Source: Rebecca billardiae RCC1528 (Eukaryota > Protista > Haptophyta). From it: DNA of 64,000 nt. Positions 12,011 to 63,108 of the stretch are shown piece after piece (the stretch's first letter is position 1; every line of letters begins with the position of its first letter). The notes under the pieces are model-generated. The model had not been told where the DNA came from and ran no database searches. It saw nothing but the letters and a program-made list of their open reading frames with translations. The translations under genes were made by a program, and so were the position numbers. The stretch covers positions 3,038,001 through 3,102,000 of the forward strand of contig OZ251224.1 in the NCBI GenBank assembly GCA_965240325.2, in the 5' to 3' direction.

Positions 12011-13049
12011 CTTTGATTTCGTACCCATGCACTTCCTGGTGGGCCTGACGACGTCCGGACGACGACAACAACGACATCCGCCATGGGGACCAACATCAAC
12101 GCGCTCACACCACTGCAACTGCTGCAAGCTTCGACAAGTACCACTACAGACGAATCAGGAGAGCTGCGCCCTCGTGCCTGTGTCTTTAAATCATAGAATT
12201 AGTCAGCAGAACTCAAGAAGGGGCAGGGCCAGCCAGGTTTGGCGTTTGCCACTGGCGACTGCACACGGCAACAGGGGCGTTTGCGCCCTGTTGTCGTGTG
12301 CACACTGGGGCGCAAAAGGGGTCACCCTCAGGGGGTTTCGCACTGCTGTTGCCGTGTGCACCGGCCCGCTGTGGCCGTGCACACGGCAACAGGGCGCAAA
12401 CGGCCCTGTTGCCGTGTGCAGGCGTGCATGGCTTGCGATGGCAGCCAGCCGTCAGCAGGGCGCCACGCCCACTGTTCGTTGGTAGGCTGGCCCGATGGCG
12501 TCGCGGAGCTCACGCGTACGGGGGAGGAGGGCATCGACGAGGAGACGACCAAGGGCGAGAAGCAGCAGGGGGCACGCAGCACGGGGCTCGGAGCATGCCG
12601 CGAGCACGCGTGCCTCCACACCGTCGCACATCAACCTTGCTCGTAGCTGTGCGCTGTGCTGCCACTCATCTCACCATCGCCCATGCTACGGGCGCGGCCG
12701 GGTGGTGGGCATCTACCTGTCGGCGCAGCACTGGCACCGGTGGTCGCCAGACACTCCTCGACTTGCTCTGCGCGTCACAGCAAGGAGACGGCAGCGGCAC
12801 AGCTGCGTGAGCACATGAGGTCCTACTACTCTAGTAGTACTCGGCGAGGCAGTACAGGCATGGACTGCACTCCAGGTGCATGCGAGCTACTGGCATACTC
12901 CCCTACTCAGACCGCAGGACCATCAATGCGGCGCTGCTTCGGATACACGAGCGCAGCGCTGCTGGTAACAGCGGCGCTGTTGATGCTGCAGCAGCAGTAC
13001 GTACAGTATAATGACGGGCGGCAGCAGTTGCTCCAACTAACAGCTCGGT

Positions 13050-14900
13050 GGTGCTCGCTTGAACGGCCTGGGCAATGGCGCGCCAAACGCAGCGACCTGG
13101 CCCATCGCGCCCGCCGCGATGGGGTCGCTGGCACCTGATGATGCTGCACCCGCGCCCATCCGGGCCGCCAACACCAGCGGCAGCCACGCTCGAGTCTGCA
13201 CTGCATGCGGCAGCAGCTGCTGGAATGGTCCCGCGGCGGATGACGGCTTTCGCCGCAGATGACAGCTCGGTGTCGCTCGCTCGAGGGGCCTCGTCGATGG
13301 ACGCGCCGAGCGCCGTGACGTTGCTCCACACGACCACGGCACTGCCCAGCGCGCTGGAGCCGCTGCCATCTGGTGCTGCTGTGCCCGCGCCCAGCTGGGG
13401 CCCAGCTGCAGCTGCACTTGACTCCGCGCCGCATTGGCTGCAGCAGCAGGGATGGTGCCACGGCGGGCGGCGTGGCTCGGCGCAGCTGTCAGCTCGGCGG
13501 TGCGCGCCCGAGGGGCCCGGGCATTGGATGCACCGAGCGCGGTGTCACTGCTCGCCTCCCGCAGCGCGCTGGAGCCGCTGCCATCCGACGCTGCTGCGCC
13601 CGCGCCCAGCTTGGGCAGCAGCGGCTGCGCTAGACTCCGCGCCGCGTGCGGCAGCAGCAGCAGGGATGGTGCCACGGCGGGCGGCGGCGGTCGCTGGAGC
13701 TGAAAGCTCGGCTGTGTGCGCCCGAGGGGCCTGGGCGGTGGGCGCACCGAACGCGGTGCCGCTGCTCGCCTCGCCCATGGCGCTCGAGCCGCTGCCATCC
13801 GACGCTGCTGCGCACGCGCCAAGCTTGGGCAGCAGCGGCTGCGCTCGACTCCGCGCCGCGTGCGGCAGCAGCAGCAGGGATGGTGCCACGGTGGGCGGCG
13901 GCGGTCGCTGGAGCTGAAAGCTCGGCTGTGTGCGCCCGAGGGGCCTGGGCGGTGGGCGCACCGAACGCGGTGCCGCTGCTCGCCTCGCCCATGGCGCTGG
14001 AGCCGCTGCCATCCGACGCTGCTGCGCCCGCGCCAAGCTTGGGCAGCAGCGGCTGCGCTCGACTCCGCGCCGAGTGCGGCGGCAGCAGCAGGGATGGTGC
14101 CACGGCGGGCGGCGTGGGTCGCTGGAGCTGAAAGCTCGGCGGTGTGCGCCTGAGGGGCGTGGGCGCTGGACGCACCGAGCGCGGTGCCGCTGCTCGCCTC
14201 GCCCATGGCGCGCGAGCCGCTGCCATCCGGTGCTGGTGCGCCCACGCCCAGCTGGGGCAGCAGCAGCAGCGGCGCTCGACTCCGCGCCGCGTGCGGCAGC
14301 AGCAGCAGGGATGGTGCCACTGTGGGCGGCGGCGGTTGCTGCAGCCGGCAGCTCGGCGGCGCACGCCCGAGGGGCCTGGGCTGCAGACGCGCTGAGCGCG
14401 CCATCGCCGCTCGCCTCCCGCAGCAGGGATGGTGGCACGGCGGGCGGCGGTGGTTGCTGCAGCCGGCAGCTCGGCGGTGCACGCCCGAGGGGCCTGGGCG
14501 CTGGACGCACCGAGCGCGGTGCCGCTGCTCGCCTCGCCCATAGCGCTGGAGCCGCTGCCATCCGGTGCTGCTGCGCCCGCGCCCGGCCAGGGCAGCAGCA
14601 GCAGCACTCGACTCCGCGCCGCGTGCGGCAGCAGCAGCAGGGATGGTGCCACGGCGGGCGGCCGCAGCAGCTGAAAGCTTGGCAGTGCCCACCCGAGAGG
14701 CGTGGGCGCTGGACGCACCGAGCGCGGTGTAGCCGCTCGCCTCGTTCCGTAGCGCGCTCGAGCCTCTGCCATCCGATGCCGCTGCGCCCGCGCCCCGGCG
14801 CCGCTGCACGGCTGCAGCTGGCAGGCCTGGCAGCAGCTGCGCTCCGGAGGCTTCGCGCCGCATGCGGTGGTAGCAGCAGGGAGGTGCCACGGCCAAGCCG
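13050..14900 (+). repeat. 214-bp tandem array (left arm of foldback)
   Basis: CTGCCATCCGACG recurs at 13578, 13792 and 14006; outer units are degenerate. Confidence 0.9.
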
Positions 14901-15699
14901 GCGGCGGTGGTCTGGCGGTGCTGAGTGCTGCTTGGCACGCGCGCCGACCGGTCGTCGTTAAATAAACTACGTATACGTACTCTACTACAGTACTACGGTC
15001 CCGGCGTAAGTATAAACTGCTGACCAGCTGACCGTGACCGTGTCGCGCCGGAGTGTAGCACGGTGATGACGCCAGCAGTCGAGCTGCTACTGCTGCTGCT
15101 CACTACTGATGCTCTTACATTGATGAGTTAGCTTCTACTAGTAACTTACACTGTGAGCCGCCAGGCCCAGCACGACTTGTCGTCGCGACAGTCCGGATGC
15201 GGACGACGAGACCATCACATCACTGAAAAGTGACTAGCTACGCGAGCAGTCAGGCTGTGACGGCGGACAGACGACAACACCGCCGCCAGGGTACCGATCC
15301 GGATAGACCGCTAGGTGGAGTAAGAGTCACTTATATATATACTGTACGCACATGACGGCAGAGTGTCGGACAGCCGCCGCCCCGGAGCTGGCTGATGCGC
15401 ATCGTCGTAGTCGGAGTACCGCTCTGAACGGCTAGTCGGAGATTGACGATGATATTCGAGATATATATGCTCGGCGGTGCCGTAGCAGTACGCGTGGATA
15501 ATTTAAAGAGTAGTTCTTACGTACGTACTCGTCTAGGCAGATGCTGATGTAGTGATGACGATGCATGATGCTGCTGATAACTTCTTCATCGCCTACCTGC
15601 CGGGCTACGACTGGTCTGCGCCGCCGGCCTTATGAATATGAGCTGACCGGCATTGCCCGCCCCGGAACCTGCTGGCGGCTCGGCTCGCACGGCAGGACA

Positions 15700-17370
15700 G
15701 AAGAAGTGTCGTAGCAACAGCTCCGGGGGCTGGCCAGCGCGCCTGACGCGTGCATCAGCGTCACTGCATTGCGCACGTCTGCCGCCCAGGCCCCTCGCGC
15801 GTGCAGCACCGAGCTGCTAGCTGCATGCACCGCCGCCCGCCCGCCGTGGCGCCATCCCTGATGCTGCAGCCGCACTCGGCGCGACAGGGCGCGGGCGCGG
15901 CAGCATCGGATGGCAGCGGCTCGAGCGCGCCGGGCGAGGCGAGAGGCGTCAGCGCGCTCAATGCACCCACCGCCCAGGCCCCTCAGGCGCACACCGCCGA
16001 GCTTTCAGCTCTAGCGACCGTCGTCGCCCACCGTAGCACCATCCCTGGTGCTGCCGCCCCACGCGGCGCGGAGTCGAGCGCAGCCGCTGCTGCGCAAGCT
16101 TGGCGCGGGTGCAGCAGCGTCGGATGGCAGTGGCTCCAGCGCCATGGGCGAGGCGAGCAGCGGCACCGCGTTCGGTGCGCCCACCGCCCAGGCCCCTCAG
16201 GCGCGCACCGCCGAGCTTTCAGCTCCAGCGACCGCCACCGCCCGCCGTAGCACCATCCCTGCTGCTGCTGCCGCACTCTGCGCGGAGTCGAGCGCAGCCG
16301 CTGCTGCCCAAGCTTGGCGCGGGCGCAGCAGCGTCGGATGGCAGCGGCTCGAGCGCCATGGGCGAGGCGAGCAGCGGCACCGCGTTCGGTGCGACCACCG
16401 CCCAGGCCCCTCGGGCGCACACAGCCGAGCTTTCAGCTCCAGCGACCGCCGCCGCCCACCGTGGCACCATCCCTGCTGCTGCTGCCGCACGCGGCGCGGA
16501 GTCTAGCGCAGCCGCTGCTGCCCAAGCTTGGCGCGTGCGCAGCAGCGTCGGATGGCAGCGGCTCGAGCGCCATGGGCGAGGCGAGCAGCGGCACCGCGTT
16601 CGGTGCGCCCACCGCCCAGGCCCCTCGGGCGTGCACCGCCGAGCTGACAGCTCCGTCGACCGCCACCGCCCGCCGTGGCACCATCCCTGCTGCTGCCGCC
16701 GCACTCTGCGCGGAGTCGAGCGCAGCCGCTGCTGCCCAAGCTTGGCGCGGGCGCAGCAGCGTCGGATGGCAGCGGCTCGAGCGCCATGGGCGAGGCGAGC
16801 AGCGGCACCGCGTTCGGTGCGCCCACCGCCCAGGCCCCTCAGGCGCGCACCGCCGAGCTTTCAGCTCTTGCGACCGTCGTCGCCCACCGTAGCACCATCC
16901 CTGCTGCTGCCGCCGCACTCTGCGCGGAGTCGAGCGCAGCCGCTGCTGCCCAAGCTTGGCGCGTGCGCAGCAGCGTCGGATGGCAGCGGCTCCAGCGCCA
17001 TGGGCGAGGCGAGCAGCGGCACCGCGTTCGGTGCGCCCACCGCCCAGGCCCCTCAGGCGTGCACCGCCGAGCCGACAGCTCCGTCGACCGCCGCCGGCCG
17101 CCGTGGCACCATCCCTGCTGCTGCCACGGCACGCGGCGCTGAGTTGAGCGCAGCTGCTGCTGCCCAAGCTGGGCGCGGGCACAGTAGTGCTCGAGGCAGC
17201 GGCTCCAGCGCGCTTGGCAGTTCCGTGGGCGCATCGAGCAGCGTCACCACGCTCGGCGCGTCCGTCGTCCAGGCCCTTCGAACCAGTGACACCAAGCTGT
17301 CAGCCGCGGCGACCGCCGTCATCCGTGCAGGACCATCCCAGCGGCCCAGCTGCTGCTGCCGCGTGCAGCA
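15700..17370 (-). repeat. 214-bp tandem array, inverted (right arm of foldback)
   Basis: Reverse complement of the 13050-14900 unit. Confidence 0.9.
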
Positions 17371-18048
17371 TAGAGTAGAGCGCCCCTCAGCCTGCCGGCA
17401 GAGTGGGGCGCAGGTGTTTGAAGCAGCACCCGGCGGTTGGTCCTGCGCTCCTGGGCACGGCTATGTACCTGTTGGTCTCATGAATGCGGGGGAATGCCAG
17501 CGCTCGCCACGCGTGCTCAGCCTCTCAGCCTCGCAAAGCAGAGGAGCACTTCATCTGCGAGCTCACACAGCTGTGCCGCTGCCGTCTCCTTGCTGTGACG
17601 CGCAGAGCAAGTCGAGGAGTGTCTGGCGACCACCGGTGCCAGTGCTGCGCCGACAGGTAGATGCCCACCACCCGGCCGCGCCCGTAGCATGGGCGATGGT
17701 GAGATGAGTGGCAGCACAGCGCACAGCTACGAGCAAGGTTGATGTGCGACGGCGGTGTGGAGGCACGCGTGCTCGCGGCATGCTCCGAGCCCCGTGCTGC
17801 GTGCCCCCTGCTGCTTCTCGCCCTTGGTCGTCTCCTCGTCGATGCCCTCCTCCCCCGTACGCGTGAGCTCCGCGACGCCATCGGGCCAGCCTACCAACGA
17901 ACAGTGGGCGTGGCGCCCTGCTGACGGCTGGCTGCCATCGCAAGCCATGCACGCCTGCACACGGCAACAGGGCCGTTTGCGCCCTGTTGCCGTGTGCACG
18001 GCCACAGCGGGCCGGTGCACACGGCAACAGCAGTGCGAAACCCCCTGA

Positions 18049-18781
18049 GGCTTGCAAACCAAGCCCCCCAAAACCCCTCGCGCGGCGAAAGGCACCGTCC
18101 CTTAGGAGTCGATGCCTTCCGGGAGCTCTTTGAATACGCGTTGCGCGTGCGCGGGCACTCCCGGACAGCCGCCGCCAAGAAGGCCAGCCTGCGCGCGCCC
18201 TCCTCGTCGTCCCCCGCGGCGCGTGCGCGTCGAGGCGCATGACTGGCTTTGTCGTGCAAGTCGTGCCCGTGCTCGCGGCTCATGCACACCTCACGACCGA
18301 GATGCATGTCTTGCGCGCCCTACTTTTGCTCGCACTGCGGTCTCCTCGCCGACAGCCTTGTGATCACGCGCGCCGCCATTTCAACCGGTTGCTGGCCTGC
18401 CAGCTGTCGAGCGTGTGTGTGCGGTCTGATCGATGTCGGCATGGCTGCCGGCGAAGCAGTGATATTGAGTACACCCATGCCCATCTCGCAGAAGCGAAAA
18501 AGCCGACCTTTGAATGTCCCAGGGGCGCACGCGTGCCCATCACGCTCGTCGGACAGGCCTTCTCCAGAACTGCGCTTGCTATCCGGCAGGTCTCTGCGCG
18601 CGGAGAGGGCGGCGAGGGCGTCGGCGAGGCGGCACGATTGCTGCCTACGGGTCTTCTAGCCCCCACAAAGTGCCCGCGCACGGCTGTCACGCCCGCATGC
18701 GGCCTTGGGAGCGCTGCGCAGGCGGGCCCTCGCGTCGCCCAGTGCTCGCCATCCCGTTTTGGGGGGCTTGGTTTGCAAGCC
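18049..18781. mobile_element. PIF/Harbinger-like MITE, copy 1, TSD TGA
   Basis: 25-bp TIR GGCTTGCAAACCAAGCCCCCCAAAA; TGA on both sides; empty site CCCTCAGGG at 12325-12333 in the sister arm. Confidence 0.85.
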
Positions 18782-19920
18782 TGAGGGTGACCCCTTTTGC
18801 GCCCCAGTGTGCACACGACAACAGGGCGCAAACGCCCCTGTTGCCGTGTGCAGTCGCCAGTGGCAAACGCCAGACCTTACTGGCAGGGCACAGTACGAAA
18901 ATGTGGCGAGAAGTACCCACTTCGCTATGAGCCTGTGAATATGGCTGATGAACGCTTCTTATATCCTTATTATTATAATAAAGACGCACAGTGGTACTAC
19001 TATTAGCAGTAGGATACTTACCTACCTGCACGTGAGAATCGCGGGAATCCTGGGCCGGCTGGGTCTATTCAACATGTCGTACAGCTTATTAATTATTATA
19101 CGCCGGCCGCGGCGGCCCATGGCTGCCGCACGTGCGCGTGCCCCGCATGCCTCGTGTACATGCACGCGACTGGTGTCCTGACAGCGAGGGCGGGGTGGCG
19201 TAGATGGTCTCGTGGGAGGTGCGTTAGTGTGCCGAAGACGTCTCGACACCTTGGTGGCATGCCCACATCTCTCCTTGTCGCCGCTTGCGCGCTGTGTGCT
19301 CGGCCAGCTGTTCAGAGTGCACGCCTGCCTGCACCTGCACGGCCAGTGTCGGGCGGATCGAGCCGCAGTGAGTGGTCGTGCGGGTACTCCCACTCGGTGC
19401 GCCTCTCTACCACTGTTGCAAGCCCTCGTGCGTCAACCCCAAGCCGTGCACTCGAACCCACGCCCTTCGTCATTCACGCGCAGCTCGTCGGAGCAGCCAC
19501 TTGTGAATTCGTGCAGCACTGCTGCTCAGTGACTACGGCGACGCAGCGAGGCATTGACGCGGGAGGGACTCTGTCACTCTGCGGAATTCTCGCGCGGGCC
19601 GCTCGCAAGACGTCAACATCGCGTCCATCGCCTAGAAACTGAGACTAGCGATTGGCTGGTTCGCTCAGATACCGTATACGCACAGTCCCACTCAGACTGC
19701 GGGCACTCAGAATAAACCGAGACTACGCCCTCGCCGGTGCCGCCGGCGGCCGGCTCAGCCCGTCAGCCGCTCCACCGAGCAAGGCGGCGCGCGGTGCGGC
19801 GCGCGCCTACTGTAGCCTGGACTCCAAGTCACTGTCATCAGCACGCTTCTGACCTGACTGGCAGTGCGCCGGCATCATGTCAACATTATAATGATGGCAC
19901 CATATATATATATATATATA

Positions 19921-20875: not shown

Positions 20876-22617
<1,742 letters not shown>

Positions 22618-24461: not shown

Positions 24462-24464
24462 TAG

Positions 24465-27037: not shown

Positions 27038-30021
27038 CCCCGGCGTTAGACTGCCCTGAGGCTTGCAAACCAAGCCCCCCAAAACCCCTCGCGCGGCGAA
27101 AGGCACCGTCCCTTAGGAGTCGATGCCTTCCGGGAGCTCTTTGAATACGCGTTGCGCGTGCGCGGGCACTCCCGGACAGCCGCCGCCAAGAAGGCCAGCC
27201 TGCGCGCGCCCTGCTCGGTCGTCCGCCGCGGCGCGTGCGCGTCGAGGCGCATGACGGGCTTTGCCGTGCACGTCGTGCCCGTGCTCGCGGCTCATGCACG
27301 CCTCACGACCGAGATGCATGTCTTGCGCGCCCTCCTTTGGCTCGCACTGCGGTCTCCTCGCCGACAGCCTTGTGATCACGCGCGCCGCCATTTCAACCGG
27401 TTGCTGGCCTGCCAGCTGTCGAGCGTGTGTGCGCGGTCTGGTCGATGTCGGCATGGCTGCCGGCGAAGCAGTGATATTGAGTACTCCCATGCCCATCTCG
27501 CAGAAGCGAAAAAGCCGACCTTTGAATGCCCCAGGGGCGCACGCGTGCCCATCACGCTCGTCGGACAGGCCTTCTCCAGAACTGCGCTTGCCATCCGGCA
27601 GGTCTCTGCGCGCGGAGAGGGCGGCGAGGGCGTCGGCGAGGCGGCACGATTGCTGCCTACGGGTCTTCTAGCCCCCACAAAGTGCCCGCGCACGGCTGTC
27701 ACGCCCGCATGCGGCCTTGGGAGCGCTGCGCAGGCGGGCCCTCGCGTCGCCCAGTGCTCGCCATCCCGTTTTGGGGGGCTTGGTTTGCAAGCCTGAGGGC
27801 AACGGGGCTTATACTGCCCTGACCCAGGCGCCGCGTTTCGGCCCGCACTGGGGCGCGGCCAGGGCAGGCCAAGGCGGCTGCCCTGACCTCTCGTCTCGGC
27901 AGGCTGCCGGTGGGCTCCGACGGGCGACGGCTCCGCTACTCGCGTGCGACGCTTTCCGCCAAGCGCGATACCGGCCCGCCCACCCCGCGTTGAAGCGCGC
28001 TGGTGCACGAGCTCGCGTGTTGAGCGCCATGGACGCTCTACGTTGGGCAGCGCCTCGCTCGCTCGCGCCTGTGGAGCCGCGCGCGCGCGTGCGCGCATGC
28101 TCAAGAGCCGCCGCCCGGCAGAGCTGATGTACGCACGCGAGAGCACCGCCTTGATGCTGACCAGCGCGGTGGCTCGCATCTCGCAAGATGAGACGAATCC
28201 GATGTTTGCTTTCACCGCCTTGGAGCCCTCTCGCGCGTGGCCACCACAAGCACGCGCGTGCGCACGCACTGAGCAGCGCAGCGCAACACGACGCGTGTGC
28301 TCTTCTCGCGCTGCCATCCATCTCCCGACGCAGAGGGCTCGAGCCTGTGCGCGCGCCTTGCCCTGCAGATGTGCGTATGCTCGCTGAACAGATCCGTGGG
28401 GGCGCCGAGCAGTCGGCGGCGTGCAGGTTGGGGGAGCAGCTTGAGAGTTGGCCTTGCGCCGCTGCTGCAGAGCCTAAGTCTCCCGGGACGCAGCCCTGGC
28501 GGCGCTGGGGGCGCGCACAGCGCGCGCTCGTACGGCCGTGGATGCGGCCGTGCAGGCCGAAGCCGCCTCTGGGCAGCCGCGAGAGAGCGCGCGGCGCCCT
28601 CCCATGCCGCGCGCCTCGCTCGCGCCACGTTCGCCTCGTCTCAGGCCAGCGCGTACGCGCACGCGAGCGCGAGCGCCAGCCGTGCACGCAGCCAACTGTC
28701 ATCAGCTCGCGCCGGTGCGGGCCGCTGTGCGGTCGGCGTGAGTCAGGCGAGCCGCCGGGTGAGCCATTGGATGAGTTTGAGATGTCTTTGACGTGTAAAC
28801 TGCTTCTCGCATCGTCGCGCTCGCGCGCCCGTGCCCCCGCGCCCGTGCTGTCATGTGACGATGCGTACGCAGCTTGTGCTACTTGCAGTGTGGCGGCCCA
28901 GCGCACACAAGTCTTGGAACACCTCAGATATGCACGTCGAAAGGAGAACGGCGTAGCTTCCGCACGGGGCGTGAGCGAGCTCATGCTAGACGAGGTCATT
29001 TGCTTAGCTGCTTAGCACCAACGAGATCTCAACCTCACCCGGCGGCTCGCCTGACTCCGCCGACCGCACAGCGGCCCGCGCCCGCGCGAGCTGATGACAG
29101 TTGGCTGCGCGCACGGCTGGCGCTCGTGCACGCGTGCGCGTACGCGCTGGCCTGAGACGAGGCGAACGTGGCGCGAGCGAGGCGCGCGGCATGGGAGGGC
29201 GCCGCGCGCTCTCTCGCGGCTGCCCAGAGGCGGCTTCGGCCTGCACGGCCGCATCCACGGCCGTACGAGCGCGCGCTGTGCGCGCCCCCAGCGCCGCCAG
29301 GGCTGCGTCCCAGGAGACTTAGGCTCTGCAGCAGCAGCGCAAGGCCAACTCTCAAGCTGCTCCCCCAACCTGCACGCCGCCGACTGCTCGGCGCCCCCAC
29401 GGATCTGTTCAGCGAGCATACGCACATCTGCAGGGCAAGGCGCGCGCACAGGCTCGAGCCCTCTGCGTCGGGAGATGGATGGCAGCGCGAGAAGAGCACA
29501 CGCGTCGTGTTGCGCTGCGCTGCTCAGTGCGTGCGCACGCGCGTGCTTGTGGTGGCCACGCGCGAGAGGGCTCCAAGGCGGTGAAAGCAAACATCGGATT
29601 CGTCTCATCTTGCGAGATGCGAGCCACCGCGCTGGTCAGCATCAAGGCGGTGCTCTCGCGTGCGTACATCAGCTCTGCCGGGCGGCGGCTCTTGAGCATG
29701 CGCGCACGCGCGCGCGCGGCTCCACAGGCGCGAGCGAGCGAGGCGCTGCCCAACGTAGAGCGTCCATGGCGCTCAACACGCGAGCTCGTGCACCAGCGCG
29801 CTTCAACGCGGGGTGGGCGGGCCGGTATCGCGCTTGGCGGAAAGCGTCGCACGCGAGTAGCGGAGCCGTCGCCCGTCGGAGCCCACGGGCAGCCTGCCGA
29901 GACGAGAGGTCAGGGCAGCCGCCTTGGCCTGCCCTGGCCGCGCCGCAGTGCGGGCCGAAACGCGGCGCCTGGGTCAGGGCAGTATAAGCCCCGTTGCCCT
30001 CAGGGCAGTCTAACGCCGGGG
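27038..30021. mobile_element. Foldback element with about 1-kb TIRs and probable 9-bp TSD (Mutator-like)
   Basis: GCTCTCGCA|CCCCGGCGTTAGAC...GTCTAACGCCGGGG|GCGCTCGCA (8/9 match); loop about 28764-29032. Confidence 0.7.
27060..27793. mobile_element. PIF/Harbinger-like MITE, copy 2, TSD TGA
   Basis: Same TIR and interior as 18049-18781; empty site CCCTCAGGG at 29997-30005. Confidence 0.85.
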
Positions 30022-30610
30022 GCGCTCGCAGCTCGCATGTAGCTTCGCTCGCCGCTCCAGGGCCAGCGTCTCCGCTCCTGTGGTAGTCTGCCAGGCATGA
30101 CGGTGATTGCTTTTTGAATTGGGATTTTTCTGCAGCTTCTGTCGTGTATGGCTCTGGAGCTCTTCCTGGGGGTGTCTGCAAGGATCGGATGGGCTCGAGA
30201 GCTCGCGCACGCGCTGGCAGCCTCCCTCCGAAGGCTACGTGCACTGCTCGCTTTCACCCATCCAGGAGCGCAGGGTAAGAATCCGAGCAGGGCGCCCGTG
30301 CGGGCAGGCGTACGATCAAAGATCACAGCAGCGGTCGCTTGCACAAGCCAAGCGACAATGGAGGTAGATTACAGGCGCCAATGTGCGTAGATACCTCAAG
30401 CACGTACATGTCACGCAACCCGCAACGCCACACGCGCCGTCGCGCCCGTGGTGTCCGCGTGGGCGCTCCCTCGTTGTGCGAGAGATGGCCCACGCTGGGA
30501 GCGATGGGCAGCCATCTCGCGAGCCGCGGCAACGCTTTTGAGCCGGACTGGCGCCCCGAGGGGACTATCTCCCTTGCGGAGGCTCACTCTCAACTCATCG
30601 CGAGGTCGCC

Positions 30611-31592
30611 GCTCGCCAGTGGCACTCGCCCGCCCGCCGCCGTGCACGGCGGCGGAGCCGCTCGCGCCGTGCGCTCCTGCGGCTGTCGAGTCGGGCCTCG
30701 GAGGCGGCGCGGGGCTTGAGCCGTCGCAGAGCCGCCCGGCGTCCCTCGCTGCGCCGCGCGCCTTCCTCGTCCTCGCCTCCTCCGCGCCTTGAAGCAGCAC
30801 GCACACGCGCGGCACCGCCACAAGCGCAGCGCAGGCGCTCGCGTGCAAGCGCGCGCGCGCAGCGCGCGACGGGCTCGACTCGGGGCTCGAGTCTCTACGG
30901 GGGCATGCAGCGCTATCGCATGCGCGCGCGACGCCACCTTGAGCCTGCGCGTTTGACCGTCAGTGGACGCTGATGCACGTTCAAAATGTTCTGACATGGC
31001 CGATCATCACACGTGCACGGAAAGCATGCACAATGGGCGTTGCGTGCGTCGACGCGATCGATGCGGAGACGGTCATGCTTGCGTGCGCCTCTCTTGGGAT
31101 CTCCGCACTGTCTGTGAAGCGCCGTATACATAGCTGTCATCGTGTCTTGTCTAAGAAGTCGTCCTGACGCATGGCAGGTGATGGTCAGACTGTGGCCTTC
31201 TTTCACAGAAGACGTGTGAGCATTAATTTTGGGGCGCGCCCAGCACAGCGATGCGCGGGCTCGAGGAGGCATCGCGCGCGCATGCGATAGCACTGCATGC
31301 CCCCGCAGTGGCTCGAGCCCCGAGTCGAGCCCGTCGCGCGCTGCGCATGCACGCTTGCACGCGAGCGCCTGCGCTGCGCTTGTGGCGCTGCCGCGCGTGT
31401 GCGTGCTGCTTCAAGGCGCGGAGGAGGCGAGGACGAGGAAGGCGCGCGGCGCAGCGAGGGACGCCGGGCGGCTCTGCGACGGCTCAAGCCCCGCGCCGCC
31501 TCCGAGGCCCGACCCGAAAGCCGCAGGAGCGCACGGCGCGAGCGGCTCCGCCGCCGTGCACGGCGGCGGGCGGGCGAGTGCCACTGGCGAGC
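30611..31592. repeat. Foldback/inverted repeat (arms about 320 bp, loop about 340 bp); TSD not found
   Basis: 30611-30930 is the reverse complement of 31273-31592. Confidence 0.85.
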
Positions 31593-35098: not shown

Positions 35099-35313
35099 AT
35101 ATATATATATATATATATATATTCATATATATATATATATATATATATATGGATATCATTATCATCAGCAGCATCAGTCGTCGTAATCCTGGAAACCCAC
35201 TAGAACAAAGGCACGACTTCACGCTGGGGACCAGCCCGTCGCAGGCCTTTTTTGACGCCCCTCTCCCCCCTTCGTCGGCCCACCGGGTCACATATGCGCA
35301 ATTCGCGTACCCG

Positions 35314-43444: not shown

Positions 43445-43522
<78 letters not shown>
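43445..43522. repeat. (AT)n microsatellite
   Basis: Direct reading. Confidence 0.95.
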
Positions 43523-46948: not shown

Positions 46949-47818
46949 GAGGAGTCGGGGGGGGAGCATCAGGTAAAAGTGTGTTGAGCCTCAGGTAAAA
47001 GTGTGTTGAGCGTAAGGGGATCCCACCCTTCACCTACGCTGACACTGTGACACATTGAGGCGCTCTGGTCAGCCAGACACGCGTGCTACGAGTGCAGCGT
47101 GGCCAGGAAGCATCACCCACTACTCCCTGGCTTACTTCACCCCGTGTCGGACGCCCTGAGTAGCAGTTCGCTTCATCGCGCGCGGGTGCGCGCGCACGTA
47201 GCCGCTGGCCGACGTGGTGAGCGCGTCGGGCGGCTGTGCACGCGCACGAATCGAGTGTCAGCAGCAGCACTCGCTCGCGCTCAGGCGGGGTAACATGTTT
47301 GCTCACTAGATAGGCGTCTGGATCAGCAAGCTACCAGCCGTGGTAGACGTTGCACCTGATGGGGTCGAAGGCTCGACCGCACGCCTGGCAACAGGAGGGC
47401 CACGAGCGCGCCCGCAACCACCGCCGCGCCTGCGTCCGCAAGGCGCAAGGGGGCTGAGCACCTATTATTGACCTTACGCGTCGCCCTGGCTGGGCCTTGG
47501 GCCAGATGTATCTATCCGCCTACCCCCAGCGTCGCGCGCAGGCTCTGAGACGGTTGGCGTCTCAACGGTCTCCTCGTCCGCGCAGTTGGTGCCGCATCAT
47601 CGAGGGAAGTGTCGTAGGCACGACCAAAATGACTGACCTGCTTGATGAAATCGGCCAGATCGACTGCCAGATCGTCGAGCTGACGAGTCGAGCTCGAACG
47701 GCCAGCGGGCCATCGAGTTCCGCGTCCTCAGATGGCAGCCCATCGGTGGGTCAATCGTCTACCTCGTCACCCATACCGACCGTACCGACCCTTCCGCTCG
47801 CCACACTGACTCTCTGAG

Positions 47819-48947
47819 CAAGGGCGGTAAGGGCTGTCAACTCCCAGTGGCGGCGGTGGCAGAGGTTGGTCGCCGCTTCGTCGCTGCGCGGCCTCGCTCC
47901 AGCGACTAACTCTCGTGGGCGCCCGCCCTGGGGGGCGAGTGGGGCGCGCACGGCGCGAGCTCCTGTGGCCGTGTACGCGCGCGCGGAGGCGGCGCGCGTG
48001 GCTGGGCAGGTGCTAAGGAGTGTATGTCGCCCTCCCACGCCGCGCGCCTTGCTCGCCGCCGCTTTCGCCGCGCCTCAGGCCAGCGCGCACGCGTGCGCCG
48101 CCTCCAGAGCCAGCCTCGGGCAATCGGCAGCCGCCCGCGCATGTGTGGTGCGCGGTCTGGTCGGCGCGAGTCGGTCGGGGCCATCGGGCGAGGCTCGCAT
48201 ACTATAGACGCGCGCCATGCTGCCTCGCGCCGCCGCGCGTGGGTTGTCATGGGTCGACACGCAAGCATCTTAGGTCTGACACGAACTGCAGCACGAATGC
48301 GAAAATGCTCATGTTTGGACGCTCATGGAGACGCTGGAGAGCACAATAGACGCGCGCAGGCGATGAAGAGCGGGGCAATGCACTCATAGGACGCCGTACA
48401 CGCGCCCAATGCGGCCGCCTATCACGCGCATGTGCGCTCACTGTCACGTATTCGAGCTCATTTCTGCTTGTCGTGCATTCATCGATCAGCTTCCTTCAAC
48501 AGCTTCACGGGATGGGACCGGGCCCATGCGCGGCGGCGCGAGGCAGCATGGCGCGCGTCTATAGTATGCGAGCCTCGCCCGATGGCCCCGACCGACTCGC
48601 GCCGACCAGACCGCGCACCACACATGCGCGGGCGGCTGCCGATTGCCCGAGGCTGGCTCTGGAGGCGGCGCACGCGTGCGCGCTGGCCTGAGGCGCGGCG
48701 AAAGCGGCGGCGAGCAAGGCGCGCGGCGTGGGAGGGCGACATACACTCCTTAGCACCTGCCCAGCCACGCGCGCCGCCTCCGCGCGCGCGTACACGGCCA
48801 CAGGAGCTCGCGCCGTGCGCGCCCCACTCGCCCCCCAGGGCGGGCGCCCACGAGAGTTTGTCGCTGGAGCGAGGCCGCGCAGCGACGAAGCGGCGACCAA
48901 CCTCTGCCACCGCCGCCACTGGGAGTTGACAGCCCTTACCGCCCTTG
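47819..48947. mobile_element. 1.13-kb foldback element (P/Galileo-like), 7-bp TSD CTCTGAG
   Basis: CTCTGAG|CAAGGGCGGTAAGGG...CCCTTACCGCCCTTG|CTCTGAG; arms about 420 bp, loop about 290 bp. Confidence 0.85.
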
Positions 48948-49134
48948 CTCTGAGCCTTGCGCCGTCGTCAGCGGTCAGAGCTCGCGCGCACGGGCGCCTT
49001 CGCGAAGGGTGGGACCGCCCACCCTTCCGCGAGTTCCGGCCCGCGCCGGTAAAAGAGATACCTATTACCTTAGTTAAGCTACACTAGTGTAGGCTACAGT
49101 ATACAGTGACTGGCGCCGCGCCCGCGACTCCGGC

Positions 49135-50114
49135 TCAGTACCCCGTGTCGCGCACGAGGTCGGTGTAGGTGCCAAATACCGCGTCCACGTCGCCCGCTGG
49201 CTTCTTGCTCGGCGCCGCCTTGCGCACGGCCGGGGGCGCGAACGCGTAGATGCGCAGTAGCTCGTCGCGCGCGGCGCGCACGTCGGCGTCGGCGCCGTCC
49301 CACGCCGTGCCGGCGAGCAGCGCGCTCGCCTCGTCCGGCCGGTCTGCGGGCAGGTCGGCCTCGTTGGTGAGCACGTGCTCGTACAGCAGGTTGGCGGTCG
49401 CGCGCCGCACGCGCGGGTACTTGTGCGCGAGCGAGACGAGCGCGGCGCGCAGCATGTACCGCCGGACGGGGAGCGAGGTGTACGGCAGCAGCGAGACGTG
49501 CGCGGACGCGCTCGCGAGCAGCCGGCGCGGCTCGCGCACGCCCACGGCCTGGCGGCGCACGAGCAGCGCGAGCTCGTCCGTGGGCGCCGACGGCGGCGGC
49601 TCGGTCGCGCCGTCGCCCTCCGCCTCCGCCACGCCGCCGCCCTCGCGCAGCGCGTACAGCGCGCCCGCGCTGGCGAGGAACTCGAGGGCGCGCAGCGCGG
49701 GCGTGAGCACGCGCTCGTCGTCCGCGTGCGCGTCGAGCTCGGTGTGCAGCATGCGCACGAACGCGCGCAGGCCGTCCTCGTCCAGCGCTGCGAGCGCGCG
49801 GCGGCGAGCGGGGCGGGGGCGCGCGTGAGCGCGCGCGGCGCGCGGCGTGGGCGGTGGGTGCGCCGCGGCGGCGCGCGCGCGCGAGAAGGGGCGGGCGCGC
49901 GCACAGCGAAGATGGGCGACGAGCGCGTTGCCCGCGCCGCGCACGGTCGACTCCGTCAGCCCGCCCACGCTCACGAGCAGCCCGAGCAGCGCGGCGCGCG
50001 CGTACGGCCGCAGGCCGAGCACGCCGACCGTGTGCGCAAACGTGTTCACCTCGCCCACCGCGTCGGCGCCCGCGCCCTCCGCGTCGGCGTCGGCGGGCTC
50101 GGCGGCGGCGTCGG

Positions 50115-50146
<32 letters not shown>

Positions 50147-51270
50147 GCGTCCGCGCCGTCCGCCTCCTCGCCCGCGTCCGCGTCCGCGTCCGCCTCCGCG
50201 CGCGCGGCTTGTGCGTACGGCGCGAACATGGCGCGCAGCTCGTGCGCGTGCGGCACGAGCGTGAGGGCGGGCTGCGCGCGCGTGAGCAGCGTGCCGAGGC
50301 AGCGCGCGGCGCGCAGGCGCGTGCGGTTGATCTTTTCGTGCGCCTGCTGCACGAGCGCGGCGGCGAGCTCCTCCGCCATGGCGGCCGTCCACACCGGCTC
50401 GGCGCCCGGCACGGCGGCGCGCGCGTCCTGCGCGCGCACGAGCATCGGCGCCATCGTCTGCAGCGCGCCCATCGCCGCCTCGCGCACCCAGCTCCCCACG
50501 TCGCCGCGCTTGTCCACCTCATAGTCGGCGCGGAGGCACGCGAGCAGCTGACCCCACACCAGCCCAACGAGCCGCTCGTCGAGCCCGTCGCGCGCCACGG
50601 CGGTCTCGTCCGCATCCGCCGGCGTCGGTGGCTCCGCCGCGTCGGCCGCGTCGGCGGTGTCGGCGGCGTCGGCGTCGGCTGCGCCGGCTGCGCCCGCGCC
50701 CGCGCCGCCCGCGCCCGCCGGCGGCGCGACGCGGAGCGTGGCCACGACCGCGGCGAGCGCGCGCACCGCGTTGCGCCGCGTCTCGGGGTCGCGCTGCTCG
50801 ACCACCTCGGGCAGCTGCGCGGCGCGGACGAGCGCGCGGACGACGCGCGCGGCGCACGGCAGCAGCTGCGCGCGCGGCAGCACGCTGAGCGCCAGCGCCG
50901 CGCCGCGCGTCGCCGCGGCGTTGTCGTCGCCAGTCAGCACGGCCGCGAAGCGCTCGCCGAGCCGCGCGTTGCGCGCCGCCGCGGCCGTGTCAAGGTACGC
51001 GGCGGCCATGGCGCCGAGCGCGGCGGCGGCGGCGGCGGAGATGGCCTCGTTCGGGTGGCGGAGGCAGTCGGCGACGGTCGAGTCGATCAGCTTGACCTGC
51101 GCGCGCCCCGTGCTCGGCAGCCGCGCGCTCGCGCAGCACTGCAGCACGCGGCACGCGGCCGCGCGCATCACCTCGCCGCCACGGCCGCGGTACAGCCGCG
51201 CGCCCTCGACCGCCGGGACCACGCCCTGCAGCGCGCGCACGTTCGCGCCGCTGAGCGCGCCGTGGGCGAG

Positions 51271-51307
<37 letters not shown>

Positions 51308-53664
51308 CCGGCGCTCGCCGGCGCCGCGCTCAGCCGCGCGAGCGCCAGCGCGAGCTCGGCGAGCATGAGCGCGGCGCCGTGGCGCACGCGCAGGTCTGCG
51401 TTGAGCGCGCGCTTGCACAGCTCGGGGATGACGACCGCGCTCGCGTACTGCGGCTCGCGCTCGCAGAGCACGCCGGCGGCACGCGCGGCGAGGTGGCGCA
51501 CGCCGTCGTCCCAGTGCTGCGCCTTCACCGTCCACAGGTGCTCGAGCAGCGCGCGCGCGTACTCGTCGAACCCGCCCACGAACTTGCCCACCGTCAGGTA
51601 GGCGCGCGCGCGAGAGCCGACGCCGTGGTAGTCGCACACGGTGATGATGTCGATGCCGTGCGCAAACGTGCCCTGCCGGCCGACGTGCTCCTGGAAGGCG
51701 GCGGCGGCGGCGCGGCGGCAGTTGACCTCGCGGTCGAAGCACGCGCACACGAGCATCGCCGGCGCGAGCGCCTCCACGTGCGCCGCCATCACCGCGGGCG
51801 CGTACGCGCGCGCAAACGCCCAGCACGCGTACGCGGCCGCGTCGCGCACGTGCTGCCCGACCGAGTGCGCCGCGCGCTGCACGTCGTAGGCGAGCGCGGC
51901 GCAGACGAGCGGCACGGCGTGGGCGAGGCGCGCGGGGAGGAGGAGGCCGCGGCGCGCGAGCTCGGCCAGCGCCAGGCAGCCGCCGTGCCACGCGCTGTGC
52001 TCCTCCGCCTCGCGGAACAGCTCGAGCACGGACGAGACGATCTCGTCGCCCAGATCGAAGGGCAGCCGCGCGACGATGCGGCCGACGCCCTTCGCGGCCG
52101 ACCAGCGCACGACGGTGTCGTCGTCGGCGAGCGCGCAGAGCATGTGCTCGACCGCCGCCTCGAGCTCCTCCGGCACCTCCGCCCCCTCGTCCTCCTCCGC
52201 CGCGCCCGCCTCGGCCGCAGCCGCCGCGCCGCCGTTCGCGGCGGCGGCGGCGCCGCGCGCCGCGCCGTTGGCGTCGCCGCTCGCGCCGCCCGCCGGCGCC
52301 GCGCCCTCGGAGGGCGGCTCGGCGCCGCCGGCCTCGCTGCTCGTGGCGTGCACGCCACAGCGCCCGGCGGGCGCCGCGCCCGCCACGCCCGACGCCTGCA
52401 GGTTGCCCAGCAGCGAGCGCGCGCCGCGCTCGTACCGCCACGCCGCGACGCGCGGCGGCAGCATCAGCAGCGCCACCCGCTGCGCCAGCTTGGCCGCGAG
52501 CTTGCGACACAGCGTCGAGCTGGGGCGCGGCTCGGGCGGCGCGAGGTGCGGCGTGAGGAGGCTGAGCGACGCGCGGAGCTCGGAGCGGTTGCCCAGGCGC
52601 AGGCACGCGCACAGCGCGCTGTACGCGCCCACGCGCTCGAACTGCGCGCGCGCCAGCGCCGCGCTGCCCGCGCCCTCGTCGCCCCCCTCGGGCGCGCCGA
52701 TCAGCTCGGTCGCCCACGCGATGAACGCGCCGAGGTGCGCTTCCATGCGCGGCCTGCGCGCGCGCGCGAGGGGCGGCGCGCGAGGGGCGGCGCGCGCGTC
52801 AGCCCGCGCCGCGCCGAGACGCGCGCCGCGCCGCGCGCGCGCGAGCGGCACGCGCGCGCGCGCGCGCCGCGCCCCGCAGGGTCAGCCCGCCCCGCGCGCG
52901 CGCCGCACCTCGTGAGCAGGCGGCCGAGGAGCACCGCCGCCGCGTCGCGCGACGGGCCCGTGGAGGAGAGCTGCTCCTTCGCGAGCTCGATCACGCTGGC
53001 GATGAGCCCGCGCGGCGCGTCCGCGCCCGCGCCGCTCGCCAGCGTCGAGTCGATGATGTTCAGGTCGAAGGGCAGCAGCATGAGCACAGACAGCCACAGC
53101 TGCACGCCGTACGCGAGCTGCCAGCCGCCCGGGGCGCTGCTGCTCGTCGCGGAGCGCAGCAGCGCGACGGCGGGCTCGAGGTCGGCGACCTGGTGCGGGA
53201 AGAACTTGACTGCGCGCGGCGGCGTGGCGCGCACGCACGGCGGCGGAGCGTGGGCGGGGGCGGGGGCGATGGTCAGCACGAGACGCCGCCAGTGCCACGA
53301 GCGCGGCGCGCGCGCGCGCGCGCGCGCGCGTCCGTCGCGCACCGATGGTCTTGTACCCGCGAACCTTGCACAGGATGTACACGACGTGCATGAGCTCGCG
53401 CATCTTGGGCGTGTCGCCCTCCGCCGTGCGCGCGCGCACGGCGCGCATCAGCGGGCCGACGATCGCCTCGAGGTGCGTGTCGAGCAGCACGGGCTGCTCC
53501 TGGTACTTGTCGAGCGTCTCGCGCACCCACTCGAGGGTGCGCGGCGTGGAGGCGGGCGAGGGCTCCGTGCCATCGACGGCCGTGTGCGCCTCGATCGTCG
53601 CAATCACCTCGTCCGCCTCGCGGAAAAGCGGCGCGGCCTCCGCGGCGTTGTCGAGAGTGGCCAT
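49135..53664 (-). CDS. TBCD: Tubulin-specific chaperone D (exons 53664-53343, 53209-52909, 52753-49905, 49787-49135)
   Basis: LDKYQEQPVLLDTHLE, KVRGYKTI|VKFFPH, DTVVRWSAAKGVGR, WHGGCLALAELARRG, FDREVNCRRAAAAAFQEHVGRQG and DKRGDVGSWVREAA; three frame-preserving GT-AG introns. Confidence 0.95.
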
Positions 53665-59400: not shown

Positions 59401-60420
59401 AGCGGAACTCGCGCTCGCCGTGGGCGTGTAGCCGTGTACAGCCCGGGCGGCTTTCCTGCAGCATGCAGAAGGGGCCGCAGCCCAGCCGGCGCGGAACATA
59501 GCGTTCGGCGTGTCAAAGGCTTCGCACTCCGCAGGCGCCGCTGCCCGCAGGCAGCTGCCATCCCGCGAGCGGCTTTCCTGCAGCATGCAGAGGGGGCAGC
59601 AGCCCAGCCTGAGCGGCTTTCCTGCAGCATGCAGAAGGGGCCACATCCCAGCCGGCGCGGAACATCGCGTTCGCAGTGTAAGGGTTTAGCACTCCGCAGG
59701 CGCCGCTGCCCGCAGGCAGCTGCCAGCCCGAGCTGCTTTCCTGCAGCATGCACAAGGGGCCGCAGCCTAGACGGCGCGGCACATCGCACTCGCCTTGCAG
59801 GGGCTAACACGCAGCAGGCGCCACTACCCGCAGGCAGCGGCCAGGCAACACAGGCATATGTGATTTCCTGCAGCAGTATGCAGAAGGGGCGGTCAACCCG
59901 AGCTGCCTTCCTGCTCATGCAGACGGGCAGCAGCCCAGCCCGAGCGACTTTCCTGCAGCGTGCAGAAGGGGCAGCAGCCCAGCCGGCGCGGAACCCGGCC
60001 CGCAGGCCGCTGGAGCCAGTGCAGGGTCGGGCACTCGCACTGAACGACAGACCTGAGGCTCTCGGAGCTGGCACAGGAAGGGGGTTCTGCTACGACCCTC
60101 CCCCAGCGGCCCGCCAGGCCGCAGCAGGTGCAGATGCTGCTGGTCAAGACGCCAGCTGGAGAGCATCGTGCCTCGTGCCTCGTGTCAAGAGCCCAGCAAG
60201 CCCTCTGCAGACCGAGGTCGCTGCAGCATGCAGCAGAGCCTGCTCGTTACACCGGCACGCGCGGTTTCCTGCTGCAGGTCACGGGGCAGCTGCCCGGCTT
60301 GGCTGGAGCCGCTGCTTTCCTGCAATGCTGGACGTGCGGCAGTCGCCCGTGCTGCAGTCGGCGCACGGTTTCCTGCAGCAGCATGCAGAAGGGGCAGCCT
60401 GCCCGAGCCGGAATTCCCTG
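56450..60420 (+). repeat. Modular satellite with higher-order periods (733 and 1509 bp)
   Basis: Core TTTCCTGCAGCATGCAGAAGGGGCAGCAGCCCAGCC recurs dozens of times; distinctive markers repeat at 58008/58741 and 57671/59180. Confidence 0.85.
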
Positions 60421-60853
60421 CATTGTGCAGGATGTGCTCCTACCACCTCTGCTGTACAAGGTGGCCGGCTGGGGCTCTGCGCAGGGCCCTGCGTAGTTGC
60501 AGCTCCGGTCCGGCGCATGCGCTTCGGCTGGCGGTCCGAGACGGCGGGCCCCTGGCTCGCGGGCGGCACTGTGGGCAGTGCGTCCGCGCCCGGGTGGGCG
60601 GTTACTGTGTGCGGGGAACGTCAGCGCGGCAAACACGTCGCAGCCGCAAGTACCCTGGTGGCACAGTGGGCTGCAACCACTCGGGCCTCCACTTGGAGGT
60701 ATCCCAACTGTCGACGACGTCGCCGATCTGGTGACTGCGTAGCAGTGGGCATAACATACTACAATCATGCGGCGAACAAGGAACAAGGACCGCTTGAGAG
60801 CAGTTCTACAGTTCACGCTCGCTCGGCGGGCGGTGCCGACCGCCCGGCGTGCC

Positions 60854-61964
60854 CAAGGGGAGTCAGGGTACAGCACGTCCAGTTGGGCTGCAGCTCAAAA
60901 GCTTCCCGCGGCGCAGCGGCACTCGCCGCCGCCGCCGCCGTGGAGGGGCGGTTGTGGCGCGCACGGCGTGAGCCGCTGCGGGCGCTGAGGTGCGCGCGAC
61001 GGCGGCGCGCCCGGCGGCGCTGCTGTAGGAGGCCACTGCCCTCCTCTCTGCCCCGCGCGCTTCGCTCGTCGTCGCCGTCGCCGCGCCTGCGACTAGCGCG
61101 CACGCGAGCGCCGCACCGCCCGGAAGCCGGGGCAATCTCAGTCGTGACTGCGCATGTGCGTCGCGACCTGGTCGGCCCAGCGCGCGAGGCGCGTGCGGGC
61201 GAGGCAGGGCCAGTGTGGCCGCGCGCCATGCCGCCTCGACCTTGCGCCAGTGGGCATGTCGCGGGCCTTGCACCTCTGTCGACAACGTTGACAAACAATG
61301 CGGCACCCAAGCGCAGACGTCAGTGTGCACGATCGAGACAGTAGGCGTACAGACGCGATAGTTGCAGAGCCTTTTGTGATCATGCGAGTCATGTATCGTC
61401 AGTGACTCTCGCCCAGGTCGTCTGCGCGCTGAACTGACGTTTTGACTGAGTGCCTCGAGATCGCCTCGACGATGGCCCGTGCATTGCTTGAAGACTCGAC
61501 ACCGAGTCCAAGCGGCCAACCAGACACACGTGCTCAGTTCCCTGTTGTACGCTCAGATGGGCTTACTTGAGGCGGCATGGCGCGCGGCCACACTGGCCCT
61601 GCCTCGCCCGCACGCGCCTCGCGCGCTGGGCCGACCAGGTCGCGACGCACATGCGCAGTCACGGCTGAGATTGCCCCGGCTTCCGGGCGGTGCGGCGCTC
61701 GCGTGCGCGCTGGTCGCAGGCGCGGCGACGGCGACGACGAGCGAAGCGCGCGGGGCAGAGAGGAGGGCAGTGGCCTCCTACAGCAGCGCCGCCGGGCGCG
61801 CCGCCGTCGCGCGCACCTCAGCGCCCGCAGCGGCTCACGCCGTGCGCGCCACAACCGCCCCTCCACGGCGGCGGCGGCGGCGAGTGCCGCTGCGCCGCGG
61901 GAAGCTTTTGTACCCAAGCTCCAGCTGCAGCCCAACTGGACGTGCTGTACCCTGACTCCCCTTG
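60854..61964. mobile_element. 1.11-kb foldback element (P/Galileo-like), 7-bp TSD GCGTGCC
   Basis: GCGTGCC|CAAGGGGAGTCAGGG...CCCTGACTCCCCTTG|GCGTGCC; arms about 390 bp, loop about 330 bp. Confidence 0.85.
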
Positions 61965-61988
61965 GCGTGCCGCACGCTTGCGCCCGCC

Positions 61989-63108
61989 CAAGGGGAGTCA
62001 GGGTACAGCACGTCCAGTTGGGCTGCAGCTGGAGCTTGGGTCCAAAAGCTTCCCGCCGCGCAGCGGCACTCGCCGCCGCCGCCGCCGTCGATGGGCGGTT
62101 GTGGCGCGCACGGCGTGAGCCGCTGCGGGCGCTGAGGTGCGCGCGACGGCGGCGCGCCCGGCGGCGCTGCTGTAGGAGACCACTGCCCTCCTCTCTGCCC
62201 CGCGCGCTTCGCTCGTCGTCGCCGTCTCCGCGCCTGCGACCAGCGCGCACGCGATCGCCGCACCGCCCGGCAGCCGGGGCAATCTCAGCCGTGACTGCGC
62301 ATGTGCGTCGCGACCTGGTCGGCCCAGCGCGCGAGGCGCGTGCGGGCGAGGCAGGGCCAGTGTGGCCGCGCGCCATGCCGCCTCGACCTTGCGCCAGTGG
62401 GCATGTCGCCGGCCTTGCACCTCTGTCGACAACGTTGACAACCAATGCGGCACGCAAGCGCAGACGTCAGTGTGCACGATCGAGGCAGTAGGCGTACAGA
62501 CGCGATAGTTGCAGAGCCTTTTGTGATCATGCGAGTCATGCATTGTCAGCGACTCTCGCCCAGGTCGTCTGCGCGCTGAACTGACGTTTTGACTGAGTGC
62601 CTCGAGATCGCCTCGACGATGGCCCGTGCATTGCTTGAACACTCACCACAGTCCAAGCGGGCAACCAGACACATGTGCTCAGTTCCCTGTTGTACGCTCT
62701 GATGGGCTTACTTGAGGCGGCATGGCGCGCGGCCACACTGGCCCTGCCTCGCCCGCACGCGTCTCGCGCGCTGGGCCGACCAGGTCGCGACGCACATGCG
62801 CAGTCACGGCTGAGATTGCCCCGGCTGCCGGGCGGTGCGGCGATCGCGTGCGCGCTGGTCGCAGGCGCGGAGACGGCGACGACGAGCGAAGCGCGCGGGG
62901 CAGAGAGGAGGGCAGTGGTCTCCTACAGCAGCGCCGCCGGGCGCGCCGCCGTCGCGCGCACCTCAGCGCCCGCAGCGGCTCACGCCGTGCGCGCCACAAC
63001 CGCCCATCGACGGCGGCGGCGGCGGCGAGTGCCGCTGCGCCGTGGGAGCTTTTGTACCCAAGCTCCAGCTGCAGCCCAACTGGACGTGCTGTACCCTGAC
63101 TCCCCTTG
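61989..63108. mobile_element. Second copy of the same foldback, 7-bp TSD GCCCGCC
   Basis: GCCCGCC|CAAGGGGAG...CTCCCCTTG|GCCCGCC; same loop sequence as the first copy. Confidence 0.85.

Follow-up and report, generated by a model that had tools for sequence, protein, structure and literature searches.

Within a 64,000-nt stretch of the genome of the haptophyte alga Rebecca billardiae RCC1528 (contig OZ251224.1, positions 3,038,001 to 3,102,000; G000:C5:3038001-3102000), hereafter referred to as the window, four foldback elements are located, each of which begins with CA, ends with TG and is bounded by a perfect 7-bp target site duplication (TSD) of its own. The host genome comprises 72 Mb in 41 contigs, with a GC content of approximately 66%. 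Together with a fifth element nested in the largest of them, these four foldbacks are very probably non-autonomous cut-and-paste DNA transposons that belong to at least three families, namely the CAAGGG group (represented in the window by families A and B), the satellite-bearing foldback E1, and a nested type of 729 bp. The families are new, and the kind to which they belong, non-autonomous DNA transposons with long terminal inverted repeats (TIRs) or foldback structure, is already known. The positions, ends and duplications of the four foldbacks, which had been listed in a preliminary description made from the letters of the window alone, were confirmed by direct reading of the ends (Table 1).

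The three small elements are hairpins, with arms of 385-432 nt that are 96-100% complementary and loops of approximately 280-330 nt. In the family B element, arms of 425 bp (99.5%) enclose a loop of 279 bp, and the element as single-stranded DNA is predicted to fold into a single 425-bp stem with an energy of -765 kcal/mol. Family A is represented in the window by two copies, 96% identical to each other, of which the second is an independent insertion situated 17 bp from the first. A duplication of 8 bp can alternatively be read in three of the four elements if the symmetry of the ends is sacrificed, whereas 7 bp alone suits all four. Internal tandem repeats, which the preliminary description had named as a feature of Galileo, are present in E1 as units of 214 bp and absent from the three small elements. 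No protein coding capacity was recognisable in these elements by a Pfam profile scan.

Table 1. Features of the foldback elements, the nested 729-bp type and the P-type open reading frame (ORF). Positions are those of the window unless a locus is named.
Feature	Position	Strand	Description
E1, left TSD	12223..12229	.	GCAGGGC; identical 7-mer at 18883-18889
E1 foldback	12230..18882	.	6653 bp, non-coding; ends CAGCC..CTTACTG; TSD GCAGGGC
E1, left 214-bp repeat array	13042..14800	.	period 214, 89% matches; 82-92% complementary to right array
E1, right 214-bp repeat array	15888..17342	.	inverted relative to left array
Nested 729-bp element, E1 right arm	18051..18779	.	24-bp TIR; start CTTGCAAACCAAGCC / CTTGCAAACC
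E1, right TSD	18883..18889	.	GCAGGGC; end read directly
Second copy of the nested type	27062..27791	.	98%; CCCTGAGGG target; TSD CCTGAGG at 27055-27061 and 27792-27798
Family B, left TSD	47812..47818	.	CTCTGAG
Family B foldback	47819..48947	.	1129 bp; ends CAAGGGCGG..CCGCCCTTG; TSD CTCTGAG
Family B, right TSD	48948..48954	.	CTCTGAG
Family A first element, left TSD	60847..60853	.	GCGTGCC
Family A first element	60854..61964	.	1111-bp foldback; ends CAAGGGGAG..CTCCCCTTG; TSD GCGTGCC
Family A first element, right TSD	61965..61971	.	GCGTGCC
Family A second element, left TSD	61982..61988	.	GCCCGCC; 10 bp past TSD of first element
Family A second element	61989..63108	.	1120-bp foldback; ends CAAGGGGAG..CTCCCCTTG; TSD GCCCGCC
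Family A second element, right TSD	63109..63115	.	GCCCGCC
P-type ORF	L061:5843-9796	minus	1317 aa, open throughout; PF21787

The largest element, E1, starts with CAGCCAGG on the left and terminates with CCTTACTG on the right, and its palindrome extends approximately 2.5 kb from each side, with unique outer arms followed inward by inverted arrays of the 214-bp tandem repeat that hold 4.9 and 6.2 units. Positions 12230-12332 pair with 18780-18882 (97%), and positions 12326-12812 pair with 17561-18050 (99%). At least 16 copies of E1 exist in the genome, with lengths of 5.5-7.3 kb and arms that are 99-100% identical, and the steps in copy size fit differences in satellite copy number combined with an insertion of 736 bp. 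The preliminary description had overlooked the 729-bp element nested in the right arm of E1. This nested element is flanked by CCTGAGG at 18044-18050 and 18780-18786, whereas the intact left arm of E1 (approximately 12320-12340) contains CCTGAGG/CCTCAGG only once and thus represents the empty site, which proves that the 7-bp duplication was made by the nested element. A second copy of the same type likewise resides in a foldback whose opposite arm shows the empty site. Because both insertions entered CCCTGAGGG, strong target choice by the nested type is suggested, on the basis of two cases.

The foldback that hosts this second copy occupies positions 27038-30021 of the window, measures 2.98 kb and has arms of approximately 960 nt (99% complementary). 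Since 8 of the 9 bases flanking it on either side agree, it makes a 9-bp TSD and belongs to a separate family, possibly of Mutator type, and the 7-bp rule therefore does not extend to every foldback in this region. Another foldback, at positions 30608-31595, has arms of 343 nt (96%), a loop of 302 nt and no clear TSD, and is probably older.

At the level of the whole genome, the 15-nt terminal motif of the CAAGGG elements, CAAGGGNNGTNAGGG, has 273 forward and 268 reverse matches, compared with 0 and 2 for the reversed motif that served as a control, and approximately 270 CAAGGG elements are therefore estimated. Variable positions within the motif (TA-A, TG-C, CG-A, GA-C, and CC-A) separate at least five subfamilies. 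Copy numbers, which are lower bounds for every family, amount to at least 40 full-length copies with 94-100% identity for family A and at least 33 for family B, 8 of which are approximately 100% identical, and the median pairwise identity inside these two families is 96-97%. Judged from the many copies that are 99.5-100% identical, transposition was recent. Insertions tend to cluster, and some elements have inserted into one another, as observed at L065, L064, and L067, where the L-numbers denote genome stretches fetched around element copies.

The TSDs of these copies are uniform in length. Among 60 fetched loci, an exact 7-bp TSD was found for 24 of the 27 copies of family A and for 23 of the 26 of family B (47 of 53 in total), with no other length seen, and when further subfamilies are included, all 54 distinct insertion sites carry a TSD of exactly 7 bp. 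Lengths that vary or fall mostly at 8-10 bp, which the preliminary description had named as evidence that would speak against its own interpretation, were looked for at these 54 sites and did not occur.

Several copies depart from the simple hairpin plan. At L066:254-2457, two tandem foldbacks form a 2.2-kb "dimer" that is bounded by only one pair of CAAGGG ends and flanked by one 7-bp TSD; the junction between the two foldbacks lacks an end motif. At L067:202-1390, the full terminal motif stands twice in one arm, the second time (CAAGGGTGGTCAGGG) 56 nt inward of the outer motif, which points to either a repeated end or a new subfamily built on an older end. L028 and L029 (G000:C14:2397174-2398292 and 2339300-2340418) are 100% identical family A copies that lie 57 kb apart; neither has a TSD of its own, and both share the flanking 7-mer CGCAAAC, so that a rearrangement between copies could be involved. 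Exchanged TSDs at these two copies were considered as a sign of inversion and set aside, as chance alone should produce approximately one match of this sort among 132 ends.

Target sites and arms both offer clues to the mechanism. Over the duplicated 7 bp, the 54 sites exhibit a weakly palindromic preference, G/Y/Y/N/R/R/C, with flanking W at -3 and +10, which means that A or T is preferred six bases from the target centre on both sides. The terminal 15 nt contain two AAGGG half-sites spaced 9 bp apart (CAAGGG-NN-GT-N-AGGG). The arms of four subfamilies can be aligned across the full 400 nt, with a mean column identity of 65% and with invariant blocks, and they stop at a conserved inner motif, CGCGCGCCATGCCGCCTCG (CGCGCGCC(A/G)TG..GCCTCG), beyond which the loops are unrelated. 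In the explanation favoured here, a DDE-type transposase supplied in trans would bind the conserved ends and probably also conserved motifs of the arms, the conserved blocks being candidates for such binding sites, and would excise the element and join it to a target cut with a 7-bp stagger. Action of this enzyme as a symmetric dimer is suggested by the palindromic target preference (W..GYYNRRC..W). Because the arms are homologous between subfamilies and the loops are not, each CAAGGG subfamily may have arisen by inverted duplication of one end, approximately 400 nt in length, of a longer element.

A candidate excision footprint is found at L045:3027-3063, where a remnant of 23 nt, composed of letters from both ends of a family A element (6-8 nt from the left and 9-11 nt from the right), lies between two exact copies of TCTCGAG. 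With 7-mers matching at a background rate of 7.3e-4 and 32 motif pairs as candidates, 0.023 such cases are expected by chance. The footprint was seen once, and the same appearance would result if the host had deleted an unstable palindrome.

Some observations weigh against the explanation based on trans-mobilised transposons. The 7-bp TSD of E1 is derived from one copy only, for which 8 bp is also possible. No autonomous copy was found; of the 541 sites of the terminal motif, the first 100, which lie on contigs C1 and C3 and on part of C5, were inspected for pairing, and none of them belongs to a long-range pair. We infer transposition in trans rather than observe it. The reads available for positions 59900-63900 are short Logan contigs from other copies, among which no piece across an insertion, no joint and no empty allele was seen, and they are uninformative.

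Three longer loci were considered as coding partners and rejected. L065:1408-4463 (3.06 kb) proved to be a 1.1-kb foldback with a nested 1.93-kb element flanked by TA, L064:253-3498 is a foldback related to family B with a 2.1-kb insert that has no Pfam match, and L066 is the dimer described above. The 1.93-kb element itself (L065:2017-3945) has inverted ends starting with CAGGTCGCTGCTTC and TA on both sides, resembling Tc1/mariner elements, and occurs in at least 18 copies that are 100% identical; its ORF of 393 aa has no Pfam match. A metagenome scan with the terminal and inner motifs returned 31 matches, all of which were single motifs in unrelated GC-rich contigs and are attributed to chance.

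Particular attention was given to the P superfamily, to which the preliminary description had assigned the four foldbacks. Pfam models of P/THAP9 transposases identify a single locus in the whole genome, with one match to PF21787 and a weak match to PF21789 in the same ORF (Table 1); PF12017 has no match in the genome, but the control was equally silent, which renders this result uninformative. A protein search of the genome yielded no paralogue of this ORF. In an exhaustive library, the ORF has 609 relatives, of which the full-length ones carry an RNase H N-terminal domain together with a GTP-binding insertion domain, the latter being the mark of P-type transposases. The contigs of these relatives are 2-7 kb long, AT-rich, transcript-like and devoid of TIRs, and no relatives were obtained by word search or by a metagenome protein scan.

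The part of the P-type transposon that surrounds the ORF extends over L061:5331-9953 (G000:C21:1532330-1536952), with the terminus AGGGGGTAGAACC. Its pieces L061:8945-9953 and L061:5331-5524 are found fused at no fewer than five other loci (100% and 94% identity), and because the two pieces recur joined in this manner, the ORF can be placed in a mobile P-type transposon with recent internal-deletion derivatives. Five such derivatives are located at C23:1265570-1266745, C23:1157903-1159078, C7:1885130-1886305, C7:879446-880621 and C3:3940671-3941846. To the left of L061:5331 (L061:1-5330 and G000:C21:1524538-1525100), a nested multi-copy element of approximately 7.8 kb is found, with 563-bp direct repeats and at least 10 copies of 98-99% identity. 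It appears to resemble long terminal repeat (LTR) elements, and the ORFs scanned in it have no Pfam matches. No TIR pair is seen at the P-type locus because this LTR-like element displaces the other end. An earlier interpretation of the locus as a gene without TIRs was overturned by the joined pieces at five loci and by the nested LTR-like element.

As a master of the 7-bp families, this P-type transposon was rejected: it is genuine and mobile, but its ends are unrelated to theirs. Under the rule applied in Repbase, a non-autonomous element should have the same TSD length as its autonomous relative, and positions 1-11 should be alignable with no more than one mismatch (PMC4455052). The P-type terminus begins with AGGGGG and not with CA, and the terminus AGGGGGTAGAAC agrees with the family end CAAGGGTAGTAA at only 7 of 12 positions. 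Compared with the arms of A, B, TAGTA, TGGTC, E1 and the nested type, the 500 subterminal bases of the P-type transposon remain at background (22-33), against 166 for A versus B. With terminus and subterminal bases both unrelated, the P-type transposon is not the parent of the 7-bp families, and the proposed P-superfamily membership is not borne out; trans-mobilisation of these families by the same transposon is conceivable and finds no support here.

It is nevertheless possible, although unlikely, that the families are non-autonomous, Galileo-like members of the P superfamily moved by a transposase of P/THAP9 type. The 54 distinct insertions with 7 bp agree with the 7-8 bp expected of P-superfamily TSDs, the 7-bp length is shared with Galileo and 1360, and the Galileo TSD consensus is likewise palindromic, G....C (PMC2775673). 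Galileo F carries tandem repeats of approximately 210 bp within its long TIRs (PMC3573991), close to the 214-bp units of E1, and the genome does contain one intact mobile P-type transposon. In addition, GGGTAG occupies positions 4-9 in both the P-type terminus and that of the TAGTA subfamily, and the candidate footprint, which retains 6-11 nt of each end between intact TSDs, resembles the product of P-element excision. These similarities are to be set against the unrelated ends and subterminal regions, against the presence of one P-type locus in 72 Mb compared with approximately 270 CAAGGG elements, and against the fact that the footprint is a single one and possibly a host deletion of a palindrome.

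The remaining alternatives concern the reality of the palindromes and other types of mover. Long perfect palindromes are a known class of assembly artefact arising from chimeric reads, and no spanning piece exists among the reads on the window; yet an artefactual origin is practically negligible here: copies number in the dozens, are spread over many contigs and are each flanked by an exact 7-bp TSD of their own, and nested insertions have empty sites. The claim of the preliminary description that the palindromes are real insertions and not read chimeras is upheld by this spread of copies over different loci, with a separate 7-bp TSD at each. The combination of a 7-bp TSD and CA..TG ends does not single out the P superfamily, since Kyakuja-1/2_LB has both features (PMC12730594) and a 7-bp TSD has been published for hAT7; Repbase also includes hAT entries annotated "7-bp TSD" (PMC4455052). 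A hAT lineage with 7-bp TSDs, similar to fungal hAT7, is nonetheless a rather improbable source of these elements. The terminal rule of hAT elements is YARNG, to which CAAGG conforms, but E1 (CAGCC) and the nested type (CTTGC) violate it, and hAT excision normally leaves no letters of the transposon, whereas the candidate footprint does.

Elements of Kyakuja/KDZ type, for which 7-bp TSDs and CA..TG ends are described (PMC12730594), constitute a very remote alternative: the described Kyakuja families have no TIRs, whereas the TIRs here measure 100-2500 bp, and the KDZ model PF18758 has no match in the genome, an argument that is weak because the control was silent too. A transposase lineage with a RAG1 fold, related to the CACTA/Mirage/Chapaev/Transib (CMCT) group, is a tentative candidate for the mover, of much the same probability as the P superfamily. 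Elements of the CMCT group typically have CA..TG ends, but those described generate TSDs of 2-5 bp (PMC12730594) instead of the 7 bp found here, and the CAAGGG, CAGCC, and CTTGC ends do not show a CAC..GTG heptamer-like start. It may even be, though this is doubtful, that the CAAGGG group, E1 and the nested type are all moved by one and the same transposase lineage, as yet undescribed, that cuts its target with a 7-bp stagger, for example a branch with the RAG1 fold.

In the vicinity of these elements, the family B foldback lies approximately 190 bp past the end of a gene for tubulin-specific chaperone D, which occupies positions 49135-52851 on the minus strand (PF25767, 9e-100; PF12612). Microsatellites of (AT)n are present at positions 22479-22574, 35099-35162, and 43445-43522, in surroundings with a GC content of 66%.

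The significance of these families resides in the presence of young, abundant and near-perfect palindromes of 1-7 kb within a gene-rich region. Such elements cause inversions and deletions in flies, and by analogy they probably shape the genome of this alga as well. Should the mover be found, an active DNA-transposon system, composed of a marked hairpin element and its transposase, would become available for algae with few genetic tools, and it would become apparent whether a 7-bp stagger evolved outside P, hAT7, and Kyakuja. If the single RAG1-fold lineage proved true, a Transib/RAG-related enzyme with a P-like stagger would be behind a recent burst that produced hundreds of hairpins in a haptophyte. 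For classification in general, a 7-bp TSD in combination with CA..TG ends is insufficient by itself for placement in the P superfamily.

Comparison with known systems reveals partial similarities to several of them. Mutator-type foldbacks, such as FB of Drosophila and Tm1 of nematodes (PMC3169594), resemble the elements reported here in being mostly non-coding hairpins with satellite-like repeats in their arms. They are reported to make 9-bp TSDs, like the separate foldback at 27038-30021, whereas the duplication is 7 bp in all five elements studied. The hAT7 elements share the 7-bp TSD, and the CAAGG end is of hAT style, although the arms described here are 400 bp in length instead of short TIRs, and no hAT transposase is linked to them. 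Kyakuja, of the KDZ superfamily, shares the 7-bp TSD and the CA..TG termini (PMC12730594) and differs in that its families lack TIRs.

Galileo, a Drosophila member of the P superfamily, resembles these families in its 7-bp TSD, its palindromic target that opens with G and closes with C (positions 1 and 7), its very long TIRs, its tandem repeats of approximately 210 bp within the TIRs (a feature of E1 only), its many non-coding derivatives composed of two TIRs, and its nested and chimeric copies (PMC3573991, PMC2775673). The differences are that no Galileo-like or P-type partner with these ends is present, that tandem repeats are absent from the three small elements, that the host is a GC-rich alga, and that the Galileo TSD consensus GTAGTAC (PMC2775673) agrees with the weak GYYNRRC in nothing more than the G and C at its two ends and the Y/R of positions 2 and 6. 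The term "Galileo-like", used in the preliminary description for all four elements, is accordingly apt for the shape of the 6.65-kb E1 and for nothing beyond it. BuT5, a miniature inverted-repeat transposable element (MITE) moved by a divergent P element (PMC3698922), has a master that shares the ends of the MITE, unlike the sole P-type element in this genome, and is comparable to the present families as a non-coding element of approximately 1 kb that long stayed unclassified and was finally tied to a low-copy P-type master.

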